This document shows positions 12,901-63,909 of a stretch of 64,000 nucleotides of DNA, one piece after another. The notes under the pieces are model-generated. The model worked only from the letters and a program-made list of their open reading frames with translations. It was not told the origin of the DNA and searched no databases. The stretch comes from Glycera tridactyla (taxonomy: Eukaryota): contig OZ286473.1 of the NCBI GenBank assembly GCA_965644265.1, positions 45,880,001 to 45,944,000 on the forward strand. The letters are read 5' to 3'. The position numbers were made by a program, and so were the translations under genes. The number at the start of each line of letters is the position of its first letter. Position 1 is the stretch's first letter.

Positions 12901-15900
12901 TCATTGGAGAATTGGCTATGTTTTCTGTGGAATTGCCTACGCCTGACTGCCCTCATAAAAATTTCATCTGTATGAAATGTTCTTGTGATACCTGTAGCCT
13001 GATGAGTGGAAACTATATTAGCCACCGTGCAAATTGGGCTAAATAGGCGATTGGAGCAATTTATTCCACTGATCATTTCTTTGGCGCTGATTACTCATAT
13101 GGCAATTGAAGCAATTCATCCCACTGATTATTTCTTTGGCGCTGATTACTCATGCGGCAATTGAAGCAATTCATCCCACTGATTATTTCTTTGGCGCTGA
13201 TTACTCATGCGGCAATTGAAGCAATTCATCCCACTGATTATTTCTTTGGCGCTGATTACTCATGCGGCAATTGAAGCAATTCATTCCACCGATCATTTCT
13301 TTGGCGCTGATCACTCATATTTGCATGGTTAGTGTCGTGAGATCTGATGCCAGGACCACCAGGTGGAATACAATTCTCTCTACTCACTCATCGTGCATTC
13401 CTGCTCTTGTACCACATATAGTGCATAGGCAATTCTCTTTGGCATACATTTACTGAGTGGAAATAGTGATCTCAATAGACAAAACAAACTACTAGTGTTA
13501 TGTCCTTCCTCGAAGTAAACTAGCACAGCCTACTTGTCCTTAGGGTGGGGTTTTCCAAATGCTTGTCCATAGAGAGTATGACAGTTTTTATGTGAGGCAG
13601 CTACACTGTGAGCATTGAATATATGTTTTCATATTTGGAAATACATGTGCTTGAATGTGCATTGACACTCTTGTTCACTCTCACGTCGAGAGTGTGCATC
13701 GGAATTTCGTTTGTTTGTGTGAGGTTTGACGGCATGTATCAACCCTAGGGTTATGTATGCCGTGTGTTCCTGGTTAATGAAAGCTAGATGTTCTCTCCCC
13801 AGCAGACACCTCTCTCACGAACCCTGAACACAGGATGAATGGGAACCTGAAAGGTTGCCAAGTGGAAGTAGCTGGCAGTTCGGACACACCTCTACCTACT
13901 CTATATCAACATAATAAACTATTGATGGCATATCTAACTATGTGTAACTGGCTGGAAGCTGACACTCAAGCTTGATAGGAATGCTTGAAAAGAGCGTCTC
14001 TAATGCTTACATGTGTATGTGTGTGTTCCTACAGAGTTCGTTAGGATTACATATACAGATACGGAAGTTTTTTATTGCATAAGGTTTGAGAGGGAGGACT
14101 CACATTGCGATTGACATCTCCAATAATACCTGTCCAGGATCCGTTGCTAAGGCGTTGACCAAACTCTCCATCAGCTACTTCCTGGAATTCCAATCGATGC
14201 CCCTTGAAGATGGTAGCCAGTAAATCNNNNNNNNNNNNNNNNNNNNNNNNNNNNNNNNNNNNNNNNNNNNNNNNNNNNNNNNNNNNNNNNNNNNNNNNNN
14301 NNNNNNNNNNNNNNNNNNNNNNNNNNNNNNNNNNNNNNNNNNNNNNNNNNNNNNNNNNNNNNNNNNTCGTCGTCCTTGTCGTCATCATCGTCATCACAAT
14401 ACCTGGCAATCAGATGGTTATTGCTTACTCACCCACAATGAAACCCCGGTAGTTCCATCGCGTTCCATTGACCACCTTGATAAAGTAGGGTACCATCTGT
14501 CGAATGTACAAGGTGACATCCCTTATAGCAGAGGCCTGTCGAATATATCCAATAGTCTGTATGATCTATCTCCACATTCGTCTAAACATTCATCCATACA
14601 TCCGTCCGTCAGTCTGTCCGTCTGCCTCTTTGTCCGTTCTTCCCTCCATCCGTCTGTCCATCCGTCGCTCTGTCCCTCCGTCTGTCTGTCTGTCTACCTA
14701 TCCATCCATCCATCCATCCATCCATCCATCCATCCATCAATCCATCCATCCATCCATCTATCTATCCATCCTTCGGTCCACCAATATGTTCATTCATCCA
14801 TCCATCCATCCATCCACTCCCCCACCCATCCATCCATTTATCCATCCATCTATCCATCCACCCATCCATCCACACATCCATCCATCCTTCGATCCACCAA
14901 TATATTCATCCATCCACCCATCCACTCACATATCCACCCATCTCTCCATCTATCTGTCTTACCGTCTATCTATCCAATCGGCTCCCAAACCATATGAGAA
15001 AATTCTCCCTCCAGCCACTACACCTCCTATTATTATATGCATTCCTTCATCCTTCAATCAGTTCATCCGTACTCACCAGTTTACTTGACACACTATACGT
15101 AGCTGAACTTGCTGCTGACGTGGTCGCAGAGGTGAAGTAGGGCCCACGCGGAGGGGTATCATGTTTGGCAGTTGTACTTATATCTATCAAGATATAGATA
15201 CATTTGTTTATAGATTTCTTCAGATTTTTATTCACGTTTATACTCACACAGGAGGTACAGGTACCATATCTCCCTAGTACCCGAAATAATACCGGACAAA
15301 AAACATGACATGAAAGACAGAGGGCTAATAGAAGAAATATATACTATTTACAGGAAGCGAGAGTAGGTTAGAAAATACGGCACAGACACAGAGAAAAATT
15401 GGAAAAATAAAAAACATTAAGCAGCATCTACGACAATACTTCAGGAGAGAGAAGAAGTGTACAGTTATATGCAAAGAAAATCGGAGACGTCTCTACCACA
15501 AATAGCTTATACTAAGAAGTTTCAAAATTGTCCACATCGTATCGATGGTCCTTAAATAGAGGTACATCAATATAGAGACCAGCATTCTATCTTCAGGAGG
15601 GTATATGTGTATATCCCAAAAATTGACATACATCGTGTTCTCCCTCGCTACATATTTAATCGGAAGAGAGTAACAGCATTTAGTTCCAGAAATTCCCACC
15701 AGAGTATCTCAAGGTATTGACAGGGGGTAGCACTTCCAGTGAGCTGACTTCCACTTCCCGTTTCAATCACCATCATGGAAGGTCATTTGGATCATCATAT
15801 TTGTCTAATCAGGTACAATAGTCATGGTGTACACCAAATATGCCTGAGCTACAGTCAGTGCAGAATCAGCTATAACTTCAAAAGTCTTGAACACGATCCC

Positions 15901-18900
15901 GACACGATCTAACAAGTGAGTTCGTCGTCTTCATTTTAATGATAGGAAATTGATACAAGAAAACATCACATAGATCTGCTCATTTTCATCAGTGCAGCTT
16001 GATATCCCTGTCGACCTAAATGCAGTTAGAATTACATCATCTTCGAAATTCTCACTCAGGCTTTATTTCTGCCAATGTCTCCTATTGCACTAAATTGTAC
16101 CGAGAAACACGAAATCAAAGGGACAAAATACTTCAAATTGTATCACCCAATGATGAGATATATTACTGGGTTGGAGTAATTGGCATTGCGTATTCTATTC
16201 ATTTTTTTCTTCTATTTAGGGGGATTGGATGTCGTACGGTATGCATTCTATCGGGGTATTGCAAATGATGTCACAACGAAAATCTCGCAATCCATTCATC
16301 ATAAAGTGGGATTGGCCCCGACCGACGTTTTATGAAACAGGTCCCTTGTGTGACCCTGTGATATCTCAGGATGGTATTCGAAATTCGGTCAGAGATATTC
16401 GGAAGTCTTTCAGGAAACAAGGTAGCAACGTGCGGCCTGAGGCCCACACATACAAGGCCTTGATTGGGGGTCAGAAATACATGTGGAACTCTCTGATCTC
16501 ATATATGGGTGCCAGAGTGGAACAAGCGATGAGCAGAAAGCCCTGACACTGATATCAGCAATGGGATGGATGTATACATTCTGCTCAACCTTGTCTCACT
16601 GGTCTCCAAATAACATCATTGTAAATGAACGAATCCAATATTCTTTCAGGGAAAGATTGACAACATTTGTGGGCGATTCTACATGACTTTGAGTTAAGAG
16701 GCTTGAACAAAAAGCGTTAAGATTTAACACAGGGGAGAGAGCTTGCCGAATATAGGTGTGAACCCTATTCGCAACTTGCGAAGGCATGAGTTCACTTGTA
16801 ACATCTTTGCAGAAATTGAGTAATTGCTCCTTTTTTCATGAGCCAACAACAGAATACTCACAAATATTATTTTGGGTGTACCTGTAAATGTAGTGTGTCA
16901 TAATACAAATTTCTGATGATACTGAGGGAGGAAGAATGAGACAAGGTTCGACGCGAATTGGCGACTTTACTGGATGAGTTGCACAGTGTCGGGAGTGTGG
17001 TGGTCGTCAATTGTTCCACTCTAGTACCCGTATGTAGCGACTTGCCGGCTGTCGGCGTGGCGGGAACAAGTAGAGAAAATCATGCAATTTATGCAAGAAA
17101 ACATCACATAGATGCACTCATTTATACCAGTGCAACTTAATATTCCTGTCGACTCAAATGCTGTTAGAATTAGATCATCTTCGAAATTCTCACTCAAGCT
17201 TTATTTCTGTCACCTATTGCACTTCAGTGTACAGAGAGACTCGTAATCAATTGGACTTGCTAATTTGTGATAGCATTTATGTATACATCTGTGCGTGAAA
17301 GAATGAAAAAATGTGATGAGTGAGTGAACGATTGAATTTTATCAAGTACATACCTAATGAAAATCCATTAAAATGTAATGTACATACACCTAACATATCT
17401 AATCCCCAACGTGTGTGCAAATATTGACAAATTTGAAGTATATTCGTGTATGTTCCTCGTGTATATATGTTATTTTGCTATTATTTCACATTGTTTATGC
17501 AGGATGGAATCCATTTTTCGGATTGATTGTATAAGTTATAAGTATATATACGTTGCAGTCAGATAAAGTTGTATTCTATTCTATTCTATGATCTTGGGAG
17601 CAGACTTCTTATGAGTTGGTGCCAAAGATTACTGGCTCCACGCCACTCGATGACTCTTCACTAACATCGTATCTGATCTGACTGCTGGATATTTAGGGGT
17701 ATTATATTCCTGGAAGATTCAAGAAATTTCACGTCATTCAAAACTACTCCTTGTGCCACATACCTGATAATAGTACGTTCTCCGTTGATCGGACCTCTGG
17801 AGATTCTGTGAAAAAAAGAATTTATAGATGTATTATGTATTATGATGCAAATGGTGTAGAGTCCTAAGTTATGAAAATTGACTCGAGCTGATCTCATGAA
17901 AAAAATGATCATCTGAGATTATTGGTTCTCATTTTATGGGGATTGACGTAAGTCATACGACATCGAATTCTTGCCATTAGATGCTTTATGCCTCATTATA
18001 TGCTTTATTATATGCACGTCTATAGCAGGACTTACTGCCAAGGTATCTTACCTCTCTACTGCAACGACTAGAGCTGCGACAATGAAAAGGAATAACTGCA
18101 AACTTACAACATTGCAACGCTAACGAAATCATAGCTTAGTAACATTGATATATTGAGATAAAACAGAATACTAAGTAGATATGAAGTATTTTACAATCTG
18201 TCTATACCGGGTCAATCATCTTACCATCTTCATATTATCATTCATTACATTATCATTTACACCATCTTTTCCACCATCATCATGTTGTCGTATTTCATGA
18301 TATGTTCATTGTTTCGTCATCCTGAAGATGTACACATTTTGTTGTGTATAAATGTATTGACGAAGAATAAAAAACTGTTAAAATCAAATCAATCATCATA
18401 TGCAGTATGTGTTGAGATTTTTGGTACCTATTTCACCCAAACTGAATCAAGCTTGCTATATGTGGATAAAGTCTTCAGATATGAACTGGTGCCAAAATCA
18501 TATGCTTTTCCACCAATATCATTCCCACTTTTCAGACATTGAGGAATTCTCCTGCCACCGTCAGTGAATTTCTGTGAAGTTCATGTCATTCGAAATTGCA
18601 GCACCACATACCTGAAACCGTACTGCTTTCAGTGGACTGGATTTCTGGAAAGTCTGTAATGAAACGATATGCATACATATTTTACAGATGGATCCTATGA
18701 CATGCGAATTCTGTAAGTTCTGAATCCATGAGTTTTGTATCAAGCCATTCTCATGGGTAATTAGTCTTCTGGGGTATTTGTTTTTTATTGGACTGGAAAT
18801 TACACAAGCTACCCTTCTTGTTTCTAATACCTATTTCAATTGAATCCACTCATGCTGCCCTGATGTTAGTATGTTCTCCTAGTTGAACTGGTGGCAAAAG

Positions 18901-21900
18901 TTAACTGCCCTACCCATTTTATGCCTTTTCATCAATATCATTCTTGATCTGATTGTTCAGACCTTGAGGAATATTCTACATTCGCCTTTCCGCCATGAAT
19001 GTATTTATGTTGACACATGTGAAGTTCACCGAATTTCATGGATTCAACATTGAAATACCACATACCTGAAATGGGACTGCTTTCCGTGGACTGGATTTCT
19101 GGAAAGTCTGTAAGGAAAAGATATGCATACATATTTGACAGATGGATCCTATCACGTACAAATACTGTGTGCTCTGATTCCATGGCGATCGAATCTAAAC
19201 AGGCTCGTATTAGTCATCTGAGATTTTTTTGTTTTTTCATTGGACTGGAATTGCTACTCTTCCTGTTGGGGTAGTCTGTCAAGGTAAGATTTTTAATACC
19301 TATTTCAATCCAATCCACCCATGCTGCCCTCATGATAGTATAGTCTCCTAGTTGAACTGGTGTCAAAAGATCACAGCCATACCCCTTTCATGCAGTTCCA
19401 CCAATATCATTATCAATTTGATTTTTCAGACATTGAAGAATATTCTACATTCGCCTCCCCACCATAAATGTATTTATGTTGACTCATGTGAAGTTCAGAC
19501 AATTCCATGTCATTCAACATTGAAATACAACATACCTGAAACCGTACTGCTTTCAGTGGACTGGATTTCTGGAAAGTGTGTGAAGAAAGATGTGCATACA
19601 TTATTTGACAGAGGGATCCTATGCCATGCGAATACTGTAAGTTCTGAATTCATGAGTATTTTTTTCATTGGACTGGATTCCACACAAGCTACCCTTCTTG
19701 TTGGGGTAGTCTGTTAAGATGATAATTTTAATACCTATTTTGATCCCATCCACTCATACAGCCCTCATGTTCAATGGTATCCTTGTTGAACTGGTACCAA
19801 AAATCACAGCCCTACCTCTTTTATGCCTTCCCATCATTATCATTCTTCATTTGATTTTTAGAGGAATATTCTACATTCTCCTCCCCACCATGAATGTATT
19901 TATGTTGACTCATGTGAAGTTCAGAAAAGTTCATGTCATTTATGAATTGATATACCACATACCTGAAACCGTACTGCTTTCAGTGGACTGGATTTCTGGA
20001 AAGTCTGTAAGGAAAGGATATGCATATATATTTGACAGAGGGATCCTATACCATGCGAATACTGTAGGTCCTGGATTCATGAGTATTGAATCAAGCCATT
20101 CCCATGAGATCTATTTTGTTTTTTTGGACGAGAATTCACATAAGCTACTCTTCATGTTGGGGTAGTCTGTTAAGATGAGATTTTCGAGACCTATTACAAT
20201 TCAATCCACTCAGGCTACCCTCCTGTTAGTATAGTCTCCTAGTTGAACTGGTGCCAAAAATCACAGACCTACCCCTTTTTATGCCTTTCCACAAATATCA
20301 ATTTCAGACATTGAGGAATACTCTCCATCTGACTGTTCATCATGAATGCATTTCTGTTGACTCATGTGAAGGTCATGTCATTCAAAATTGCATTACCACG
20401 TACCTGGAACCGTACTTTCAGTGGACTGGACTTCTGGAATGTCCGTGAGGAAAAATATGCATACGAATTTGACAGATGGATTGTATGCTATGCAGATAGA
20501 GTGGATGCAAATTTCATGGGATTCGAATCAAGTCACCCTCTTGTGACTTCAATCTCCTAATATTGTTGGCTCTTTTTTTATTTGAATTGACAAACGCTAC
20601 CCTCACTTCGTGGTAATCTGTTGAGATTGTTGGTACCTATTCCATTGAAACGAACTCAAGCTACGCTCTTGTGTGTGTATTCTCTTGATTGAACTGGTGC
20701 CAAAGTATCATAACCCTCCCTATGTCTTTCCACCAAAATTGTTCTTGCCAAAAGGTGCCAGTCAGTGCTCAGAGTGTTTTTCCTGTGGATATTGATATAG
20801 ATAAGACGCAATCTTATAGAGAAGAATCAGAGCTTCCCCTTCGTATACATTCTAAGAATAGAACGTTCAGATCACATGACTCAGAAGCCGGATGTATCAA
20901 TTTTACGGAAAACGAATGCGAAGTTGAAGGCTAGACTGTGCTCAACTGGCTATTGTGAAAAATGATTCGAAATATCAGCATACTGTCTTTACACACATGT
21001 GTGTTTGACTCTTGTGGAGTTCAAGATATTTTTCTCATGAAGATTTATGTAGATTTACCATAAAGTGGGTATTTCTCAGTGGGAATGTCTGGATCGTTCA
21101 CCTGAGAATTTGTTTAGGATTCCTCTGAAATACTATCTTTATTCTCAGCATCATTATCACACTTTCCCTGGAATGCTAGTACATTCCATATAGCCATCAC
21201 ACAGTCCTGATCCTTTATGAATACTACCTAGGACCATCAGGCAGATCTGACTTAGACTAATGCTAACCAATCACCATTTTGGTTGCGAGATATATGATGA
21301 TGAGCGAAGCCCAGGCCATCAAATCAGCTGGTTGTGCATAGTGTACATTTTATCGATCAGACAGGCAGGTTTTTATTTTGAAAAATATACACTTAATGAT
21401 TACTGTATCAACTCATTACCATTGATGTATGTTTCTACTAACCTCACTCGTGACCGCCGTAAAAAGCTCTCATGAGCTGAATGCGGGTTGTATATATGTT
21501 GTACATTTCACGAGTTTGAATAAAGTTGTTTGAAATTGAATTTGAATAATGTCTGTCATGTATTCAGTGTGTATCGCCAGGTATCACCGCATCTGTCTCG
21601 TCTCCTCTGCTCTTTCGATCTGCTGTGATGAAATGTGTTTCGAATCGAAAAGCTGCACTTACTATCGTTTTCCGTATGTTCCGTCTGCTCTATATAAGTA
21701 TTTTGATGATTATTGATGGATTTTTAAGGATGCAGAGCTTGGCAGTAGACGCTATGCATTCTATTTTTGAGTTGTCAAAATCTCGTGCATTGGATGGAAT
21801 TTTAATGTATCCGTCTGGGAGTGCATCACAAAATTCACGTGGGTAATATCTTTGGTATGCAGTGACGTGAGCCCATATGAAGTAAAGAGTCAATTTGATT

Positions 21901-24900
21901 TCTCTGACATTAACCCTTTAATGCATAATAACCTGTGTCTGTGACACCCCAGAAGAACACGCACCACGAGCAACATCGTGACGCTACTCCCAGCATGTAA
22001 GGTAGACGTCACCGTCTGTAGGAAAAAGATCGCTTGATGACGTCATTTTAACACTTTGCATATCGTCAAGCCCTTTGACCACAAAATTCCATCAATAATC
22101 ACCAAAATATTCTTAAAGGGCAGACAGAGCACGCAGAAAACGATGGTAAGTGTAGATTTTGATTGGAATCCCCATTTTATACAGCTGATCGAAAGAACTG
22201 AGATGGAAGACGCGCTGATCCCGGCAGTACACACTGAATACATGTCAGACGCCGGGTAAACAAACCAGACCTTCTCACGGAAAAATACCAATCCCTCGAG
22301 AAATATATGTCAGATCATGACATTTTAAATTGCAATACTACATACCTGAAACTGTATAATGTTCTCAATGGACTGAACTTCTGAAAGTTTGTGAGAAAAG
22401 AATATGCATGGATGATTCGAAAGATGGAGTGTATTCTAATTTCGTAGGATTCAACTCATTTTGCTGGGGTTTTTTGGTTCCGGGTTAACTTCACATCAGC
22501 CACATATGTGATGTACATACAATGGGCATATGTGATGCCAATACAATTTGCATGAGTGGGACCATTCAAGGCTCATCCGGCTTTGCATTTATGATATATA
22601 TCCCAGTTGAAACATAAAGTCCAGGATTTCATGTCACTCGATAGTGCATTTCATGCCACATACCTGAAGTTGGTACGTTTTTGGCGGGTTGACTGTCTGG
22701 AAAATCTGTAAAAAGAATACACATACATGATTAGACTTCTGTATCGTTTCTCGTGCAAGAACTGGAGATCCTCTTTTCGAAGAAAATTGACTCAAGCTGC
22801 CCACGTTTTGCAGTTGACTGTTGAGATTATTGATACCGATCACATATGAATCAATCCAACTAATCTTATGGATTGCATATTATAGGTTCTGATCTCATGG
22901 ATGAAAATTTAAAATTGATAACCAATTTCAGCCCGTCAAGGAGCAAATTGGAAGCAATTGAAACTCAATAATGTGATACCCTTTGAATGCAACATACGTT
23001 CATATTTATATTCGAATACAGTCGAACCTCCCTTCATTCGCATCAAAAAGTGCTCTTTAAAGGGAGGTTTTCCTTATAGGGAGGTAATTTACTGTTGAAA
23101 ATACTACTACGGTCGCAGCTCAGGGTGGTCTTTATAGGGAGGTGGTCTTTATAGAGAGGTGATCTTTAGAGGAGGTTCGACTGTACATTCCTTTACACTT
23201 GTGATCGTGGTATTATGGAATTGCATGATTTCATGGCATACCTATTGTATATTGCATTATTGTATATTGTATATTGCACTATTGTATATTGAATATGTCC
23301 TGTGAATATCCTGGATACATCTGGTTTCAGATACGGGACGTTGTTGAAGATTGAAAATAAATATATGAAAAACGAGCATTGGCTCAAGCACCTTCCCCGC
23401 TCCCACATTTTGAGCATGGTCTACGAAGATTGTAACATCCTTTTCCATAGGAATTGACTCATGCTACCTTCAGTTTGGTGTAATCTCCTGAGGGCATGGG
23501 TTCTACTTAATCTTGTGAGGCTTCATGAAGGCTTACATTTTATGGAGACTAGGCCAGACCCTTGCCATGCACAGGTGTATTATGGTGGTTTCCCATGAGG
23601 TAATGAACCATGTGAATATCATCAAACCTGCCTGAGAGACCACCTTTGTACAAAGGTCACCTGCCTACAGATACCCCACTGAGCTGCAACCATGACAGTA
23701 TACTCTACAGCGAATGACCTCTGTCAGTACTGAAGAAAGAGTCTTTTAACAGATAAGAGTTTCAGATTGTTGGTGGGCTCTTGGCCCCATTTTTACCTTT
23801 TCTGCGCATTGATATATTGCCTAATATGGGTTCTCTGAACGAGCCTTCGTGTCCCTATCAACCGTTGACAAACTCAAGGTGGCTCATTTTTTCAGTAATG
23901 ATCCATTGTATCTCTGATTCATGGACCATATGGGCCCACAAACCTGTCAGAAAATATGACAGTCAGTGTTGAATATGATTGACAAGGAATGCAACTTATT
24001 TCCGGAGGTGGAGTCATCCATTGCTTTTCTTGACCAAGAACTTGTGTTTTAGGATTAGAGTCTCATCACATTGAGCTGTGTAATAAATATAGCCTGACTG
24101 AGAAGAGAGAAGATAAACCTCACAGAAAATTTACAAGGGAGGTGCTGCAATCACGTTGTGGCAGTTTTGTCTAAAGTATTTACCTTGCCTAAATAGTACA
24201 TTTCTTTTGAGATGCATGCTGTTGACATGAGAATTGGCTCATCCACTGGCTAAAGCTCTGGAACTAGTGTAGATCCACTTTCTTCGCCCAAATACAGTCC
24301 AACCTGTCTTAGGCAGCCATCTACTAAGCAGCCACCTGCCCTAAGCAGCCACTTTTGAATTTACCGACTAGACTTTTTCTACTATAATTAACCAGCTCTA
24401 AGCAGCCACCTGCCCTAAGCAGCCACTTTTTGCCTTCCCGAAGGATGGCTGCTTAGGACAGGTTCGACTGTAATGACAACTGATGATTTCTGCCAGCAAC
24501 CATCTGTTTATTGTGTGGCTTTACAGAAACACTGCAAGTCACTGTGACCTACTTTAAGCCTTCTGTTCTAGGAGAGGACAATGTGACAATGAGTGTACTG
24601 CCCATTCATCTGGTCCCTCAGCTGCCTCTGACCACTGTGTGAGATCACTGCTCCATCATTGTACATTCTCACTGCCATTTCTCCGATCAATTCTCCCAAA
24701 GTTGGTGAATTTTTCAAGGATTGTCAAAAATGAGTACTTTCATCATCAGTTGTGTAGAAGATGGGATACACCAAAATTACTTTCATGGGTAACTGTCGTT
24801 TATGAAATGGTGCACCCACCGTGACAATATTTATTCACCAGGATGTCCCCCATTTGGATATCTAGATGAAAAAAGTTCTCATTTTCATCGCAGATATATG

Positions 24901-27900
24901 TACAACATTTGACGAAAAATACAAAATACATGATGATAACACAAAACAAAATACATTATAATACTCATAAGTCAAATCAAATTGCTGCTAGATTTCATAA
25001 GCTATTGATAATAGATTCACGCTGCTAAGCATTCAATGAACGCCATAGTTGTTCGTAATCATGTGAATGCATCATCAATATACATCTTAAATATTATTTT
25101 TGAACATGAAGGCTGACTGCCTTGTGTCGTTTGGACGTTTCTTATTTTAAAATAGCAAGACTTTCTGTGTCATGAATGATCGGGGGCACTACTCTTGTGT
25201 GGGCGCCATTTGCTAGGATTATAGATCTTTATTTCATGGGAAGTGAGGGCATAGTCTTCTGATAATAGTCTCACCTCCTACTCTTCTGATTATAGATCTT
25301 TATCTCATAGGAAGTGAGGGCATTGTCTTCTGACAATGGTCTCATATCCTACTCTTCTGATTATAGATCTTTATCTCATAGGAAGTGAGGGCATTGTCTT
25401 CTGACAATGGTCTCATCTCCCACTCTTCTGGTTATAGATCTTCATCTCATAGGAAGTGAGGGCATTGTCTTCTGACAATGGTCTCATCTCCCACTCTTCT
25501 GGTTATAGATCTACATCTCATAGGAAGTGAGGGCATTGTCTTCTGACAATGGTCTCATCTCCCACTCTTCTGGTTATAGATCTTTATCTCATAGGAAGTG
25601 AGGGTATGGTCTTCTGATGATGGTCTCATCTCCTACTCTTCTGATTATAGATCTTCATCCCATAGGAAGTGTGAGCAATGTCTTCTGATAATAGTCTCAC
25701 CTCCCACTCTTCTGATTATAGATCTTTATCTCATAGGAAGTGAGGGCATGGTCTTCTCATAATGGTCTCATCTCCTACTCTTCTAGTTATAGATCTTCAT
25801 CTCATAGGATGTGTGGGCATTGTCTTTCGATGATGGTCTCATCTCCTACTCTTCTGATTATAGATCTTTATCTCATAGGAAGTGAGGGCATGGTCTTCTG
25901 ATAATGGTCTCATCTTCTACTCTCCTGATCATAGATCTTTATCTCATAGGAAGTGAGGCCATGGTCTTCTGATAATGGTCTCATCTCCTACTCGTCTGAT
26001 TATAGATCTTTATCTCATAGGAAGTGAGGGCATGGTCTTCTGATAATGGTCTCATCTCCCACTCTTCTGATTATAGATCTTCATCTCATAGGAAGTGAGG
26101 GCATGGTCTTCTAATAATGGTCTCATCTCCCACTCTTCTGATTATAGATCTTTATCTCATAGGAAGTGAGGGCATGGTCTTCTGATAATGGTCTCATCTT
26201 CTACTCTTCTGATTATAGATCTTTATCTCATAGGAAGTGAGGCCATGGTCTTCTGATAATGGTCTCATCTCCTACTCATCTGATTGTAATCCTTCGATCC
26301 GAGAGCCAAAATGCTTGCTTGTAAAATACTCTTATAAAGACTCTGATAGATTCCCTGGTCTCAAGGAACTGTGTTGAAATCCTTACGTCTGTTCAATATT
26401 TTGTCTGGCTGGGAACTCAAGCAATCAAGTGACCTCAGAGGTAAGAAATAGCAAGTATAAAGACTAGGCCCTAGGAATTTCCTCAGTCCCTTTTGTTAAG
26501 GACTGTGCTACTCTTACTGATTATCAAAACGTTGTCTAGGGTAGACAACAAAAAAGCGTGATTGTGAAAAATCTTTCCTCAGGCAACCAACTGTGATTCA
26601 AGATTCATAATGTGAAGAGCATGTTTTGTTCAGAGACAGGCATTGAAACACGGAACAAATAAGTAACAGATATTGATTTAGATTCATTTATTGTAGGAAT
26701 AACTCTCCTCCTCGCTCCATCACCCTTCTCTTCTTGATATCGAGTATGAAAATAGAAAGCACAAGCTAAGCGGATCTCCAAGTACTTCAAAGTAGAAGTA
26801 TTCGCATAATCATTCACATTCAATGTCACAGATACTCAACTTACACCCAAATATCTGCAGTCAACACACTTTCTGCTCCATGCTCACCCAGTCGGATCCA
26901 AGGAAGAAGTGCACATGGTTAGTGTGTGTAAGGGACAGGAAGTATGAATGATGGATGAAGATGAATTGGAAGATCAAAAGATCTCAACTTATCTACCCAA
27001 GTTCAACCCAACCCAAGTGTGTAGATCCTCTGAAATTATCGGTTCCGAAACGATACGCTATAAAGACAGAGAAAACATTTCGAGTCTATGATAACACAGA
27101 ACCGAACACGTCATCTCATCTCAGCGAATACCGAATCTAAACAATTTCCAAGACTACACGAGCGGACGGTGCGATTAAGAGATGATATTCTACAATAACT
27201 TCGTGGACCAAGTTCAGCTTCGAAACATTCAAGTTCTAACTCTGGGATCAAGAAAGAACTTAAGTCGAAGTGATGCTGGTCATTAGAAAGCGATAATCTT
27301 CATAGCGATGAGCCAGAGAGTGAATGAAAGAAACACCGGGAGGCGTTCAATGACAACTGCGAATGCACCTACAAGTCTCGCTCTGATGGAAAGAAGCAAA
27401 GCGCTGTAGCACACACAACACACATATCGCTGATTTGCTCAAGCATACGGCAGGCCGCTAAAGCTGGAAAGAGTTCATCAGGTATTCGAACACTTTAAAG
27501 AAGAATTTGGAAGTCTATGAAGACGAATGAAGCTTCAAGACTAAAGAATTCAATTCTAAATTGAAATTCAACACCAAAGAAGTGTTCAAAGAATAGTGTT
27601 CACAGTGTAAGACGCTGCAATTTGACTAAAGAGTTCAAACTGTAAGAAATGTGCCCAAGAGAAGCTTAGAGACTATCAACCAGGACAAGGGTATTCATAC
27701 TCTGTCGGGGACAGTGTCACTCAAATGGATTCACTACAGTGAACAAAGTCAACCGGTTTTCACCACTGGATTGTTCATCGGTGAATCTTAAGATGTGGCA
27801 AGGTGAAACACATTACCAGTTACCATGCAGTGCTGGTCGACTGCAATGCACCGTGCTGCATACCGATTCAGAAGATGTCGTAATGTCACGAGATGTCGTC

Positions 27901-60602: not shown

Positions 60603-60847
60603 TTAAGAAGGTAGAATGATTTCACATACAGAACCCGCAGGTATAGAACAGTTCGCATTCTCGAACATATAAGCGTAGGAAGTGGACTGCATGAGCCAGA
60701 TGCAAGTGCCCTCAAATGGCCGCCGTTGGATGCCCCAGTTCCGGTGGTGTAGCGAGATCTCGGCTAAAGTGTCCGCCCAAACGAACTGCGATATTCGTTC
60801 TAGATATCTACCGCCTATCCACCATCCTTCCCAGCCATCGAATAGTG
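60603..60847 (-). CDS. Gene A C-type lectin domain, C-terminal half and stop
   Basis: WWIGG (WIGL-like motif)...FVWAD...NW...CIWL...NC...VCE, then TAA at 60603-60605; tatttgcag| acceptor in phase 1. Confidence 0.88.
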
Positions 60848-63800
60848 CTGCAAATACAGAATGTAGATTTTGAAGTTGATTTACTTTTGGGTAGGAACCG
60901 AAGCTGTATTCGTCAGTCACTGGCGCCGTTTCGGTCTTCGACAGCTACCTCAGTGGGTTTTTCTTGATGAATGCTTCATGAAGGCTAAATCCATAAGCAC
61001 TGTCTCANNNNNNNNNNNNNNNNNNNNNNNNNNNNNNNNNNNNNNNNNNNNNNNNNNNNNNNNNNNNNNNNNNNNNNNNNNNNNNNNNNNNNNNNNNNNN
61101 NNNNNNNNNNNNNNNNNNNNNNNNNNNNNNNNNNNNNNNNNNNNNNNNNNNNNNNNNNNNNNNNNNNNNNNNNNNNNNNNNNNNNNNNNNNNNNNNNNNN
61201 NNNNNNNNNNNNNNNNNNNNNNNNNNNNNNNNNNNNNNNNNNNNNNNNNNNNNNNNNNNNNNNNNNNNNNNNNNNNNNNNNNNNNNNNNNNNNNNNNNNN
61301 NNNNNNNNNNNNNNNNNNNNNNNNNNNNNNNNNNNNNNNNNNNNNNNNNNNNNNNNNNNNNNNNNNNNNNNNNNNNNNNNNNNNNNNNNNNNNNNNNNNN
61401 NNNNNNNNNNNNNNNNNNNNNNNNNNNNNNNNNNNNNNNNNNNNNNNNNNNNNNNNNNNNNNNNNNNNNNNNNNNNNNNNNNNNNNNNNNNNNNNNNNNN
61501 NTATGGCAAAAAGATGCAAAGAACGGGATGAAAGTTTTCTACAAGGACCAACTTCAGTCGAGTGACTTTTGTGACAATGTGGTCTCTTTGGAAAAGTGGT
61601 TCATCGTGAAACTCCCATTGCAGTCACCTACTACGAGTAACCCTTTAGGACAGGTGGTTGGTTGAGTATGTTTTGATGTTAGATCACTGTCATGTATGAT
61701 AGATTATGACGACCATGCAATGTATATGGGTGGCAAATATACAGGGGTAATTTAGCGAACCAAATGATCAGGTTCAACTTTACTCACGAGTAACAGAGCT
61801 GAGAAGACCAGCGAGGTAGAGGCGTTTGTCGACGGAATCGATCCGAGCTAGGTGCGCATGCGCGTCTATCCGTCGACAGTAAGCTTCCGCTTCCGTGTAG
61901 GTGCGTGCGCCGTGCGGGTCCGAGTGAATGCGGAAGCATGAAGAAATCCCATCAGCCTTGCGAAATCCCACCGGACAGGAGGCTACAATGAATTAAGGTA
62001 ATTTTTGTATGGGCAGGAACTGATTGCGATGAGCCCATCATATTGTCATCTTGGTGGAATCGGTCAACGTGTAGATCATGACAGTGAAAAGATGTATCCT
62101 CAGGGAAAGCATGGAGCAGTATCTGNNNNNNNNNNNNNNNNNNNNNNNNNNNNNNNNNNNNNNNNNNNNNNNNNNNNNNNNNNNNNNNNNNNNNNNNNNN
62201 NNNNNNNNNNNNNNNNNNNNNNNNNNNNNNNNNNNNNNNNNNNNNNNNNNNNNNNNNNNNNNNNNNNNNNNNNNNNNNNNNNNNNNNNNNNNNNNNNNNN
62301 NNNNNNNNNNNNNNNNNNNNNNNNNNNNNNNNNNNNNNNNNNNNNNNNNNNNNNNNNNNNNNNNNNNNNNNNNNNNNNNNNNNNNNNNNNNNNNNNNNNN
62401 NNNNNNNNNNNNNNNNNNNNNNNNNNNNNNNNNNNNNNNNNNNNNNNNNNNNNNNNNNNNNNNNNNNNNNNNNNNNNNNNNNNNNNNNNNNNNNNNNNNN
62501 NNNNNNNNNNNNNNNNNNNNNNNNNNNNNNNNNNNNNNNNNNNNNNNNNNNNNNNNNNNNNNNNNNNNTTGTTTGTCTGTCTGTCTCTGTCTGGTTATCT
62601 ATCTGTTTTCAATACAGCAGTTTTCAAAATTATTCTCATGTCAACATACTGCTTAATCAGCCACATCGATGATCCCCTGTGACCCGCGCTACATTCATTG
62701 ATATTTCTTTGCATCCCGACCTTTTAGAGCTCAAAGGCGTAATTCTTTGCTCACTCCGACGGCAAGAAAAACATACGTGTTAGGAACACGCGTTGCACAT
62801 GTACAGACGTACCTAGGCAGCCCCTGTCATCATCTGCCAGTGTGTAGAGTTCTCGGCAGACACACTGGTGAGATCCTTCCAAGTTGATACAGTTCTGCTG
62901 GCATCCGCCATTATCACTCAGACACTCGTTCTCATCTGAAAGCATGTAGAGTTCCGTTTATGTTAGGCGGGTTTAAGAGTATATTGATTGATGGATTGAC
63001 TGGCTAGCTGATCGACTGATTGACTGAACGACTCTCATTCGCCCAATTATCGTTTGCAAACTGATTGATTGACTGATTGATAGATTGATTGATTCATTAA
63101 TTGATTTATTGATTTATTGACCGACTTACTGATCGATTGATTGATTGGTTGATTGATTATATAATCGAATAAATCCAATGTCTAACTGACTGGTTGATTG
63201 ATTGATGAATTGATTTACCATATGATTGAACGTTTGAATGATAAAGCAATCTATCGATAAAATGATGGGTCAATCGATTGATGACAGAGTAAAAGGTGTA
63301 TGGATTGACCGACTCAATGATGGATTGACTGACTGATTGATCATGTGACTTGATTGTTGTTCCATACATTGTTTGTCTCATTGACTTGCTTAGAGATCCA
63401 ATGACGTGGTGAATGACTGACAGAGGGATTGATTGATCGATTGATTGATTGGTTTGCCGATCGATTGATCGATTCAAATCAATTCATTTATTGATAGATT
63501 GATGGATGAATTCATCCATTATCCATTATTTCATTCATTTATTCATTCATTCGTTCATCTGCTCATTCGTTCATTGATACATTGATTGATTCATTCATTT
63601 ATCAATCCATCCATTCATCCATCCATCTATTCATTCATTCATCCATTCATTCATTCATTCATTTATCTATCCATTCATCCATCCCTTTATTCATTCCATC
63701 ATCTAACATGCATTCATTTATCCATCCATTCATCCACCGAATTTTGACCGTCAGTAATCTCAATTCCCTCGATAATGTCTACCTACCCACACATGACACC

Positions 63801-63909
63801 CCATCTGTATCAACTTGATATCCGGGGCGACAGCTACAGTTATACGAGCCATTCGTATTGACACATGTGTCCTCACAAAAAAAGGTACCACTTGCGCATT
63901 CATCGATAT
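60603..63909 (-). CDS. Gene A, 3' part: EGF-EGF-C-type lectin domain protein (5' end beyond the window)
   Basis: Four phase-1 exons with canonical sites: 63787-63909, 62813-62935, 61788-61982, 60603-60847, ending CEIILPS-TAA. Confidence 0.88.
61788..61982 (-). CDS. Gene A C-type lectin domain, N-terminal half
   Basis: SCPVGF...SSCFRI...TYTEAEAYCRR...HLARIDS (long-form CTLD pattern); cattgtag| and C|gtgagt. Confidence 0.88.
62813..62935 (-). CDS. Gene A Ca-binding EGF exon
   Basis: DENECLSDNGGCQQNCINLEGSHQCVCRELYTLADDDRGCL; ctttcag| and G|gtacgt; 123 nt, phase 1-1. Confidence 0.92.
62980..63740. repeat. (GATT)n/(CATT)n degenerate tetranucleotide tract in the EGF-EGF intron of gene A
   Basis: Visible runs. 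Confidence 0.9.
63787..63909 (-). CDS. Gene A Ca-binding EGF exon
   Basis: DIDECASGTFFCEDTCVNTNGSYNCSCRPGYQVDTDGVSCV; ttttgcag| and G|gtaggt; 123 nt, phase 1-1. Confidence 0.92.

Follow-up and report, generated by a model that had tools for sequence, protein, structure and literature searches.

The subject of this analysis is a tandem array on the minus strand of a 64,000-nucleotide (nt) stretch of the Glycera tridactyla genome (assembly GCA_965644265.1, contig OZ286473.1, positions 45,880,001 to 45,944,000 of the forward strand). We call this whole stretch the window and count positions from its first letter. Between 22705 and 17764, a short cassette occurs in eight homologous copies, of which five are intact and three decayed. 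An exon and its intron were duplicated together in tandem to form the array, and, judging from the genomic sequence, we think it rather probable that the duplicated cassettes are real 42-nt exons, frame-symmetric in phase 1-1. An extracellular protein would gain ~14 residues from each exon in use, as part of a low-complexity spacer that is rich in Ser, Thr, Pro and Glu and probably O-glycosylated. Splicing, glycosylation and any tuning of length by the cassettes are what we infer, while the copies, their ends and their divergence were observed directly. EGF and candidate lectin-like exons lie upstream of the array, and a Ser/Thr-rich exon (exon A) followed by the exons of a pore-less glutamate-receptor binding domain lies downstream (Table 1).

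Eight copies of the cassette in tandem

All five intact cassettes have the same build, i.e. a pyrimidine tract, YAG, 42 nt and then GTATGTGG, and each is free of stops in phase 1-1 when read with the final G of the preceding cassette. A preliminary description of this DNA had proposed five minus-strand cassettes with a pyrimidine tract, AG, 42 nt and a GT donor, coding for 14-mers in phase 1-1; all five were found as described, and their phase 1-1 frames were indeed open. As a count of the array, however, five was too low: five copies are intact, but the total is eight, and the three decayed copies, an inner acceptor and an inserted foldback element had been overlooked.

An nhmmer profile made of the cassette with its flanks produced exactly 8 matches in the window, with E-values from 1e-17 to 1e-32. 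The 26-nt core of the cassette was matched 5 times in the real sequence compared to 0 times in 100 shuffles. The distance from unit to unit varied from 427 to 470 nt, and TRF run on the window reported a 427-nt period for the array. The introns flanking the cassettes are homologous from unit to unit, with an identity of 74-81% between units. Because the homology includes these intron flanks, the duplication took in the exon along with its intron, and on this point the preliminary description is borne out.

We also observed a second candidate acceptor, YYCAG/A, nine bases inside each copy and in frame, which would yield a 33-nt form shorter by three residues (minus-strand positions 17796, 18644, 19098, 19568, 19995 and 22696). 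In the decayed copies the inner site would leave 33 nt in frame for the copy starting at 19577, 30 nt in frame for the one at 20442, and 35 nt with a broken frame for the one at 22388. A 33-nt exon form made through the inner acceptor is possible. In all, 5-7 copies would be usable. Given the phase 1-1 symmetry, skipping any cassette would keep the frame.

The fraction of Ser, Thr and Pro among the cassette residues ranged from 0.38 to 0.54. With about half of its residues being Ser, Thr or Pro, the cassette peptide has a composition like that of exon A.

The history of the array is one of tandem duplication of an exon-plus-intron unit of ~450 bp, with two old copies now standing at the edges and a younger burst of five copies in the middle. 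Three copies would at present be decaying into pseudo-exons.

Conservation of the cassettes

For the four youngest copies, we found that the cassette varied in 4 of 42 columns and had no gap, whereas the flanking introns had 98 variable columns among 250 ungapped ones, in addition to 143 gap columns. The difference in variability between cassette and intron was significant (Fisher p = 6e-5). A sliding conservation profile reached its maximum on the exon, with shoulders extending from about -80 to +50.

For the two outer copies, alignment to the central ones was limited to the stretch between about -95 and +60 relative to the exon; identity there was ~65%, and none of the 16-19 gap positions fell inside the 42 nt. 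The introns of the outer copies were otherwise near saturation. The outer-copy exons had an identity of 57-64%, no higher than the ~65% of the proximal intron across the aligned part. The comparison of exon and intron conservation that had been proposed as a check thus favours the exon in the young copies and fails to do so in the outer ones. The earlier argument that the outer copies, strongly diverged in sequence, point to selection is thus weaker than presented: what they keep is the length of 42 nt, the splice sites and the exon ends, and not the exon sequence as a whole.

Conservation was concentrated at the ends of the exon. The 11-nt junction CAG/GTATGTGG was identical in all five intact copies, both outer ones included. 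Invariant bases made up 8 of the first 10 positions and all of the last 4, compared to 6 of the 28 positions in the middle. The sole deletion inside the exon of a still-usable copy removes 3 nt. Such conservation of ends and length, combined with a divergent middle, points to a constraint on splicing and length under which the low-complexity peptide would be free to evolve. Moreover, the donor 8-mer was changed in three of the three copies that lack the acceptor AG and in none of the five intact copies; joint damage to acceptor and donor is as predicted for relaxed selection on a dead exon.

Spliced exons or an unspliced repeat

The case for exons is made by the difference in conservation between cassette and intron, by the old copies, by the joint decay of acceptor and donor, and by the fit of frame and composition with the neighbouring exons. 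The frames are compatible on both sides: an EGF exon with a phase-1 end precedes the phase 1-1 cassettes, and exon A is entered in phase 1.

The strongest alternative, which we regard as doubtful, is that the cassettes are not spliced at all. The array would then be a local tandem duplication, intronic or intergenic, that carries a chance AG...GT pair or a long-dead exon, and its core would owe its conservation to recent duplication, local gene conversion or a non-coding element. Three of the eight copies are already broken, as one would expect under this alternative. One of them, 19577-19536, has no acceptor AG and still keeps an exon part 100% identical to that of its neighbours; some of the exon identity could therefore be due to recency or local gene conversion, provided that this copy is not kept in use by its inner acceptor. 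Against the alternative, the conservation peak matches the exon borders, and acceptor and donor decay jointly in the broken copies. The old copies provide arguments in both directions: the conservation of their exon sequence does not exceed that of the proximal intron, and they are open in all three frames, yet they share the identical donor junction with the young copies and have no indels in the 42 nt despite gap-rich flanks. The coding frame had a pN/pS ratio of ~0.5, compared to ~1 for the other frames, a difference that is not significant with 14 codons and so lends weight to the unspliced alternative.

A cautionary example was found at another locus. Directly upstream of the S1 exon of a paralogue of the receptor-domain gene (~G000:C39:59571445-59572975) there is a minisatellite with units of 54-55 nt. 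By repetition alone, its units mimic phase 1-1 cassettes of the form AG/54 nt/GTGTGA (VIVFTGGAVRDALLFTP). Therefore, recurrence among the young copies is not independent evidence for exons, and the minisatellite can serve as a negative control for micro-exon arrays recognised by eye.

Several further observations weigh against the cassettes as exons, particularly as exons of the receptor-domain gene. In the window scans we identified neither a start exon nor a signal peptide that a transcript with the cassettes could use; the scan for signal peptides and first exons upstream of the array gave weak candidates only, e.g. 31246-31165. Exon-by-exon searches of protein and transcript-fragment libraries returned nothing for the exon A stretch and nothing for the last-exon stretch, and exon C had only four spurious RRM-repeat hits in a large protein library; the product is thus absent from those libraries. 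Separate first exons upstream of exon A are plausible: besides the candidate at 15311-15248 there are three further ATG candidates directly upstream of exon A, and with 15311-15248 as its first exon the receptor-domain gene would not need the cassettes. Finally, the relatives of the receptor domain, most of them fragments, are compact, look self-contained and have no mucin-like N-terminus. For example, a relative coded by a 1194-nt Logan contig (ERR6338309), apparently a transcript, has ~30 residues before S1 and no mucin-like part.

Besides the borders and the junction, the surroundings of the array speak for real exons. The frame fits both upstream and downstream, the composition is like that of exon A, and the phase-1 donor of the EGF exon needs a partner, for which there is no other candidate within the intervening 13 kb: between this donor (35842) and the first cassette, no convincing exon was found.

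Which gene owns the array

Table 1. Cassette copies of the array and exons or candidate exons around it, in window positions
Feature	Position	Strand	Remarks
Cassette 1 (old, diverged)	22664..22705	-	42 nt; TTTTTACAG acceptor; GTATGTGG donor; phase 1-1; peptide opens with D
Decayed copy	22346..22388	-	acceptor AA for AG; 43 nt, frame broken; donor GTATGTAG
Decayed copy	20404..20442	-	acceptor GG; in-frame 3-nt deletion (39 nt); donor GTACGTGG
Young cassette	19963..20004	-	42 nt; 14 residues
Decayed copy	19536..19577	-	exon part 42/42 identical to neighbours; acceptor AG to AC; donor GTATGTTG; only inner acceptor usable
Young cassette	19066..19107	-	42 nt; 14 residues; 4 bases differ from neighbours
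Young cassette	18612..18653	-	42 nt; 14 residues
Last cassette (old, diverged)	17764..17805	-	42 nt; peptide opens with E
Candidate first exon of receptor-domain gene	15248..15311	-	ATG; 21 codons; GTGAGT donor; phase 1; 64-nt intron to exon A
Exon A	15077..15183	-	AG acceptor; entered in phase 1, ends in phase 0; Ser/Thr-rich; 35 residues
EGF-domain exon	35842..35970	-	phase 1-1; GTATGT donor; frame-compatible with first cassette
Candidate C-type-lectin-like half	60606..60944	-	by-eye reading; no Pfam hit
Candidate C-type-lectin-like half	61783..61992	-	by-eye reading; no Pfam hit
EGF_CA exon	62817..62924	-	Pfam
EGF_CA exon	63791..63898	-	Pfam

If the cassettes are exons, we assign about half of the chance to transcripts in which they would be joined to exon A and through it to the receptor domain, whether or not the upstream EGF/lectin-like exons are included. 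The rest goes to an arrangement in which the cassettes would end the upstream EGF/lectin-like gene and the receptor-domain gene would start separately.

In the latter arrangement, which we hold to be unlikely overall, the cassettes would belong to the upstream gene only, as its C-terminal mucin-like stalk or tail, and the receptor-domain gene would have a small first exon of its own, e.g. 15311-15248. The open phase-1 GTATGT donor of the EGF exon at 35970-35842 is in line with it, as are the EGF_CA and candidate C-type-lectin-like exons further upstream on the same strand; proteins composed of lectin, EGF and mucin-stalk parts are a common architecture. The compactness of the receptor-domain relatives, which start ~30 residues before S1, and an in-frame stop 5' of the ATG in the Logan contig also speak for a separate receptor-domain gene. 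On the other hand, the lectin-like halves have no Pfam hit, the candidate first exon of the receptor-domain gene would make a poor signal peptide, and exon A matches the cassettes in phase and composition.

The upstream gene would also need an end. A candidate exon at 17046-16877, Ser/Thr-rich and entered in phase 1, could terminate the protein at a stop at 16870, although its donor is weak. As an internal exon, running from phase 1 to phase 0, it was rejected since the frame would be lost ahead of exon A; all that remains is a possible use as an alternative terminal exon. Downstream of the array there is no convincing membrane anchor, and the scan for a transmembrane exon after the array gave no credible one. 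The sole transmembrane-like open frame, 15432-15329, was rejected as mis-oriented (its arginines are on the wrong side, which breaks the positive-inside rule) and as T-rich DNA, and a second candidate, 18119-18051, was rejected for a phase misfit.

The most inclusive arrangement, one transcription unit running through the whole region, we consider improbable, more so than the upstream gene alone. Lectin-like and EGF exons would be followed by the micro-exon spacer, exon A, and then the pore-less glutamate-receptor ligand-binding domain, which has a lipid-anchor-like tail. The phases of all junctions would permit such a unit, and no other partner was found for the EGF donor. If true, its product would be a chimeric surface protein. 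A mucin spacer, amplified recently and spliced variably, would then determine how far the adhesion-type modules lie from the small-molecule-binding clamshell.

Exon A itself has no in-frame ATG, joins the S1 exon (~14524-14432) of the receptor binding domain, and occurs once in the genome. A whole-genome retrocopy search with exon A found no processed copy showing the splice pattern. If the cassettes feed the receptor domain, they would lie N-terminal to it, far from the C-terminal membrane tail, and would form a spacer or an N-terminal extension rather than a membrane-proximal stalk. The label 'stalk', which the preliminary description had used, is thereby uncertain.

The neighbourhood contains several repeats and reverse-transcriptase frames. 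A ~190-nt segment is duplicated at 17060-17256 and 15930-16124, between the last cassette and exon A, with the two copies 1.13 kb apart and 80-90% identical. Between the EGF exon and the array, at 25217-26300, there is a 71-bp tandem satellite with ~15 copies of roughly 90% identity. Reverse-transcriptase (LINE-type) open frames are present on the minus strand at 38629-40968, inside the upstream gene, and at 10172-12184, within an intron of the gene that codes for the receptor domain. The upstream gene extends past the end of the window.

Paralogue and relatives of the receptor domain

A genome search with exon C detected one paralogue, at C39:59.57 Mb (G000:C39:59572518-59575712) on the contig that also contains the window, and a genome search with the last exon detected relatives at 31-41% only. 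The paralogue has 35% identity over the S1-S2 junction exon, and one of its exons, of 236 codons, has a hydrophobic tail at its end. A Paralvinella palmiformis protein is among the relatives of the paralogue, and it was through this paralogue that the receptor-domain relatives described above were detected. We found no comparable Ser/Thr cassette array in the 20 kb upstream of the paralogue. The relative coded by the Logan contig likewise has a hydrophobic C-terminal tail. It has no obvious signal peptide, which raises the question of how members of this family reach the membrane.

Local duplication versus a satellite

The preliminary description had spoken of a ~450-bp 'satellite'. A search of the whole genome (2.04 Gb) with one unit gave matches at the array locus only. 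The cassette signature TCCAGA-N28-TCAGGTATGT had six matches in the whole genome, all of them inside the array, compared to two control hits. A unit unique to one locus in a genome of this size indicates local duplication, and the term 'satellite' is a misnomer. The repeat also differs from a satellite or a dispersed repeat in having eight copies at a single locus and an exon core significantly better kept than the rest of the unit. An Rfam search of the array matched no family.

A 700-bp foldback (MITE-like) transposon at 21551-22250, with inverted arms of ~190 nt, splits the array between copies 2 and 3. This element is not part of the unit and has at least 1448 candidate copies genome-wide, at ~76-83% identity.

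On the plus strand, open reading frames at 19352-19717 (121 codons) and 19719-20165 (148 codons) span units of the array; a Pfam search of the plus-strand frames spanning units found no domain. Although the 427-nt TRF period and these two long frames could suggest a satellite, a transposon family or plus-strand coding across whole units, this explanation is hardly credible and already largely refuted, as the unit and the signature are confined to one locus, the real transposon inside the array has, by contrast, more than 1400 genomic candidates, and the plus-strand frames have no Pfam match and are open in two units only, as in junk sequence.

Comparison with known systems

The closest known case is SmPoMuc of Schistosoma mansoni, where a ~1-kb unit with a 27-bp exon is present in up to ~20 copies and each exon codes for one mucin repeat (PMC2576457). 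The number of repeats varies among SmPoMuc transcripts (PMC2576457). In both systems the tandem genomic unit is one tiny exon plus its intron, coding for a mucin-like repeat. The array described here has a short exon and flanking intron in each unit, an exon length that is a multiple of three with the same phase at both ends, and a repeat rich in Ser, Thr and Pro. Unlike SmPoMuc, it has a 42-nt exon, a ~450-bp unit and only 5-7 copies that would be usable. The intron identity is 74-81% here compared to >94% in SmPoMuc, and instead of a multigene family there is a unit at a single locus. The host is different as well (a free-living animal, with annelids as the source of its named protein relatives), and so are the flanking domains (EGF and glutamate-receptor binding domain).

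Three other systems can be compared with the array. Exons A, B and C of CD45 and the variant exons of CD44 are frame-symmetric, Ser/Thr-rich and O-glycosylated, and their combinations alter the length and glycosylation of the protein. The cassettes would resemble them as frame-symmetric, Ser/Thr-rich cassettes, but the CD45 and CD44 exons exceed them in size, did not arise as recent tandem copies of a single unit, and have documented alternative use. Schistosome micro-exon genes (MEGs) contain symmetric micro-exons that can be skipped without a frameshift. In MEGs, unrelated micro-exons supply most of the coding sequence for a small secreted protein, whereas here one cassette type was duplicated and the neighbours are EGF and receptor-binding-domain exons; thus, we do not class the array as a MEG. 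Thrombomodulin- and CD93-like proteins have a C-type lectin domain with EGF repeats, a Ser/Thr-rich stalk, a transmembrane helix and a short tail. Compared to this layout, the EGF_CA exons are confirmed, the lectin-like halves have no Pfam hit, the array would be the putative stalk, and no credible transmembrane exon was found.

Biological significance

The principle that tandem micro-exon repeats can code for mucin-like segments, with frame-symmetric exons permitting skipping, is already established, and the general interest of the array is modest for that reason. If the cassettes are spliced, the array would be a clean, datable case of an animal gene that lengthens a glycosylated spacer by copying an exon with its intron and then loses copies by decay of their splice sites. 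Old, young and dying copies are all visible within one array. As for the neighbouring receptor-domain gene, a long mucin-like N-terminus, or a fusion with EGF/lectin-like modules, would change what its protein, with a channel-less glutamate-receptor domain, could do.

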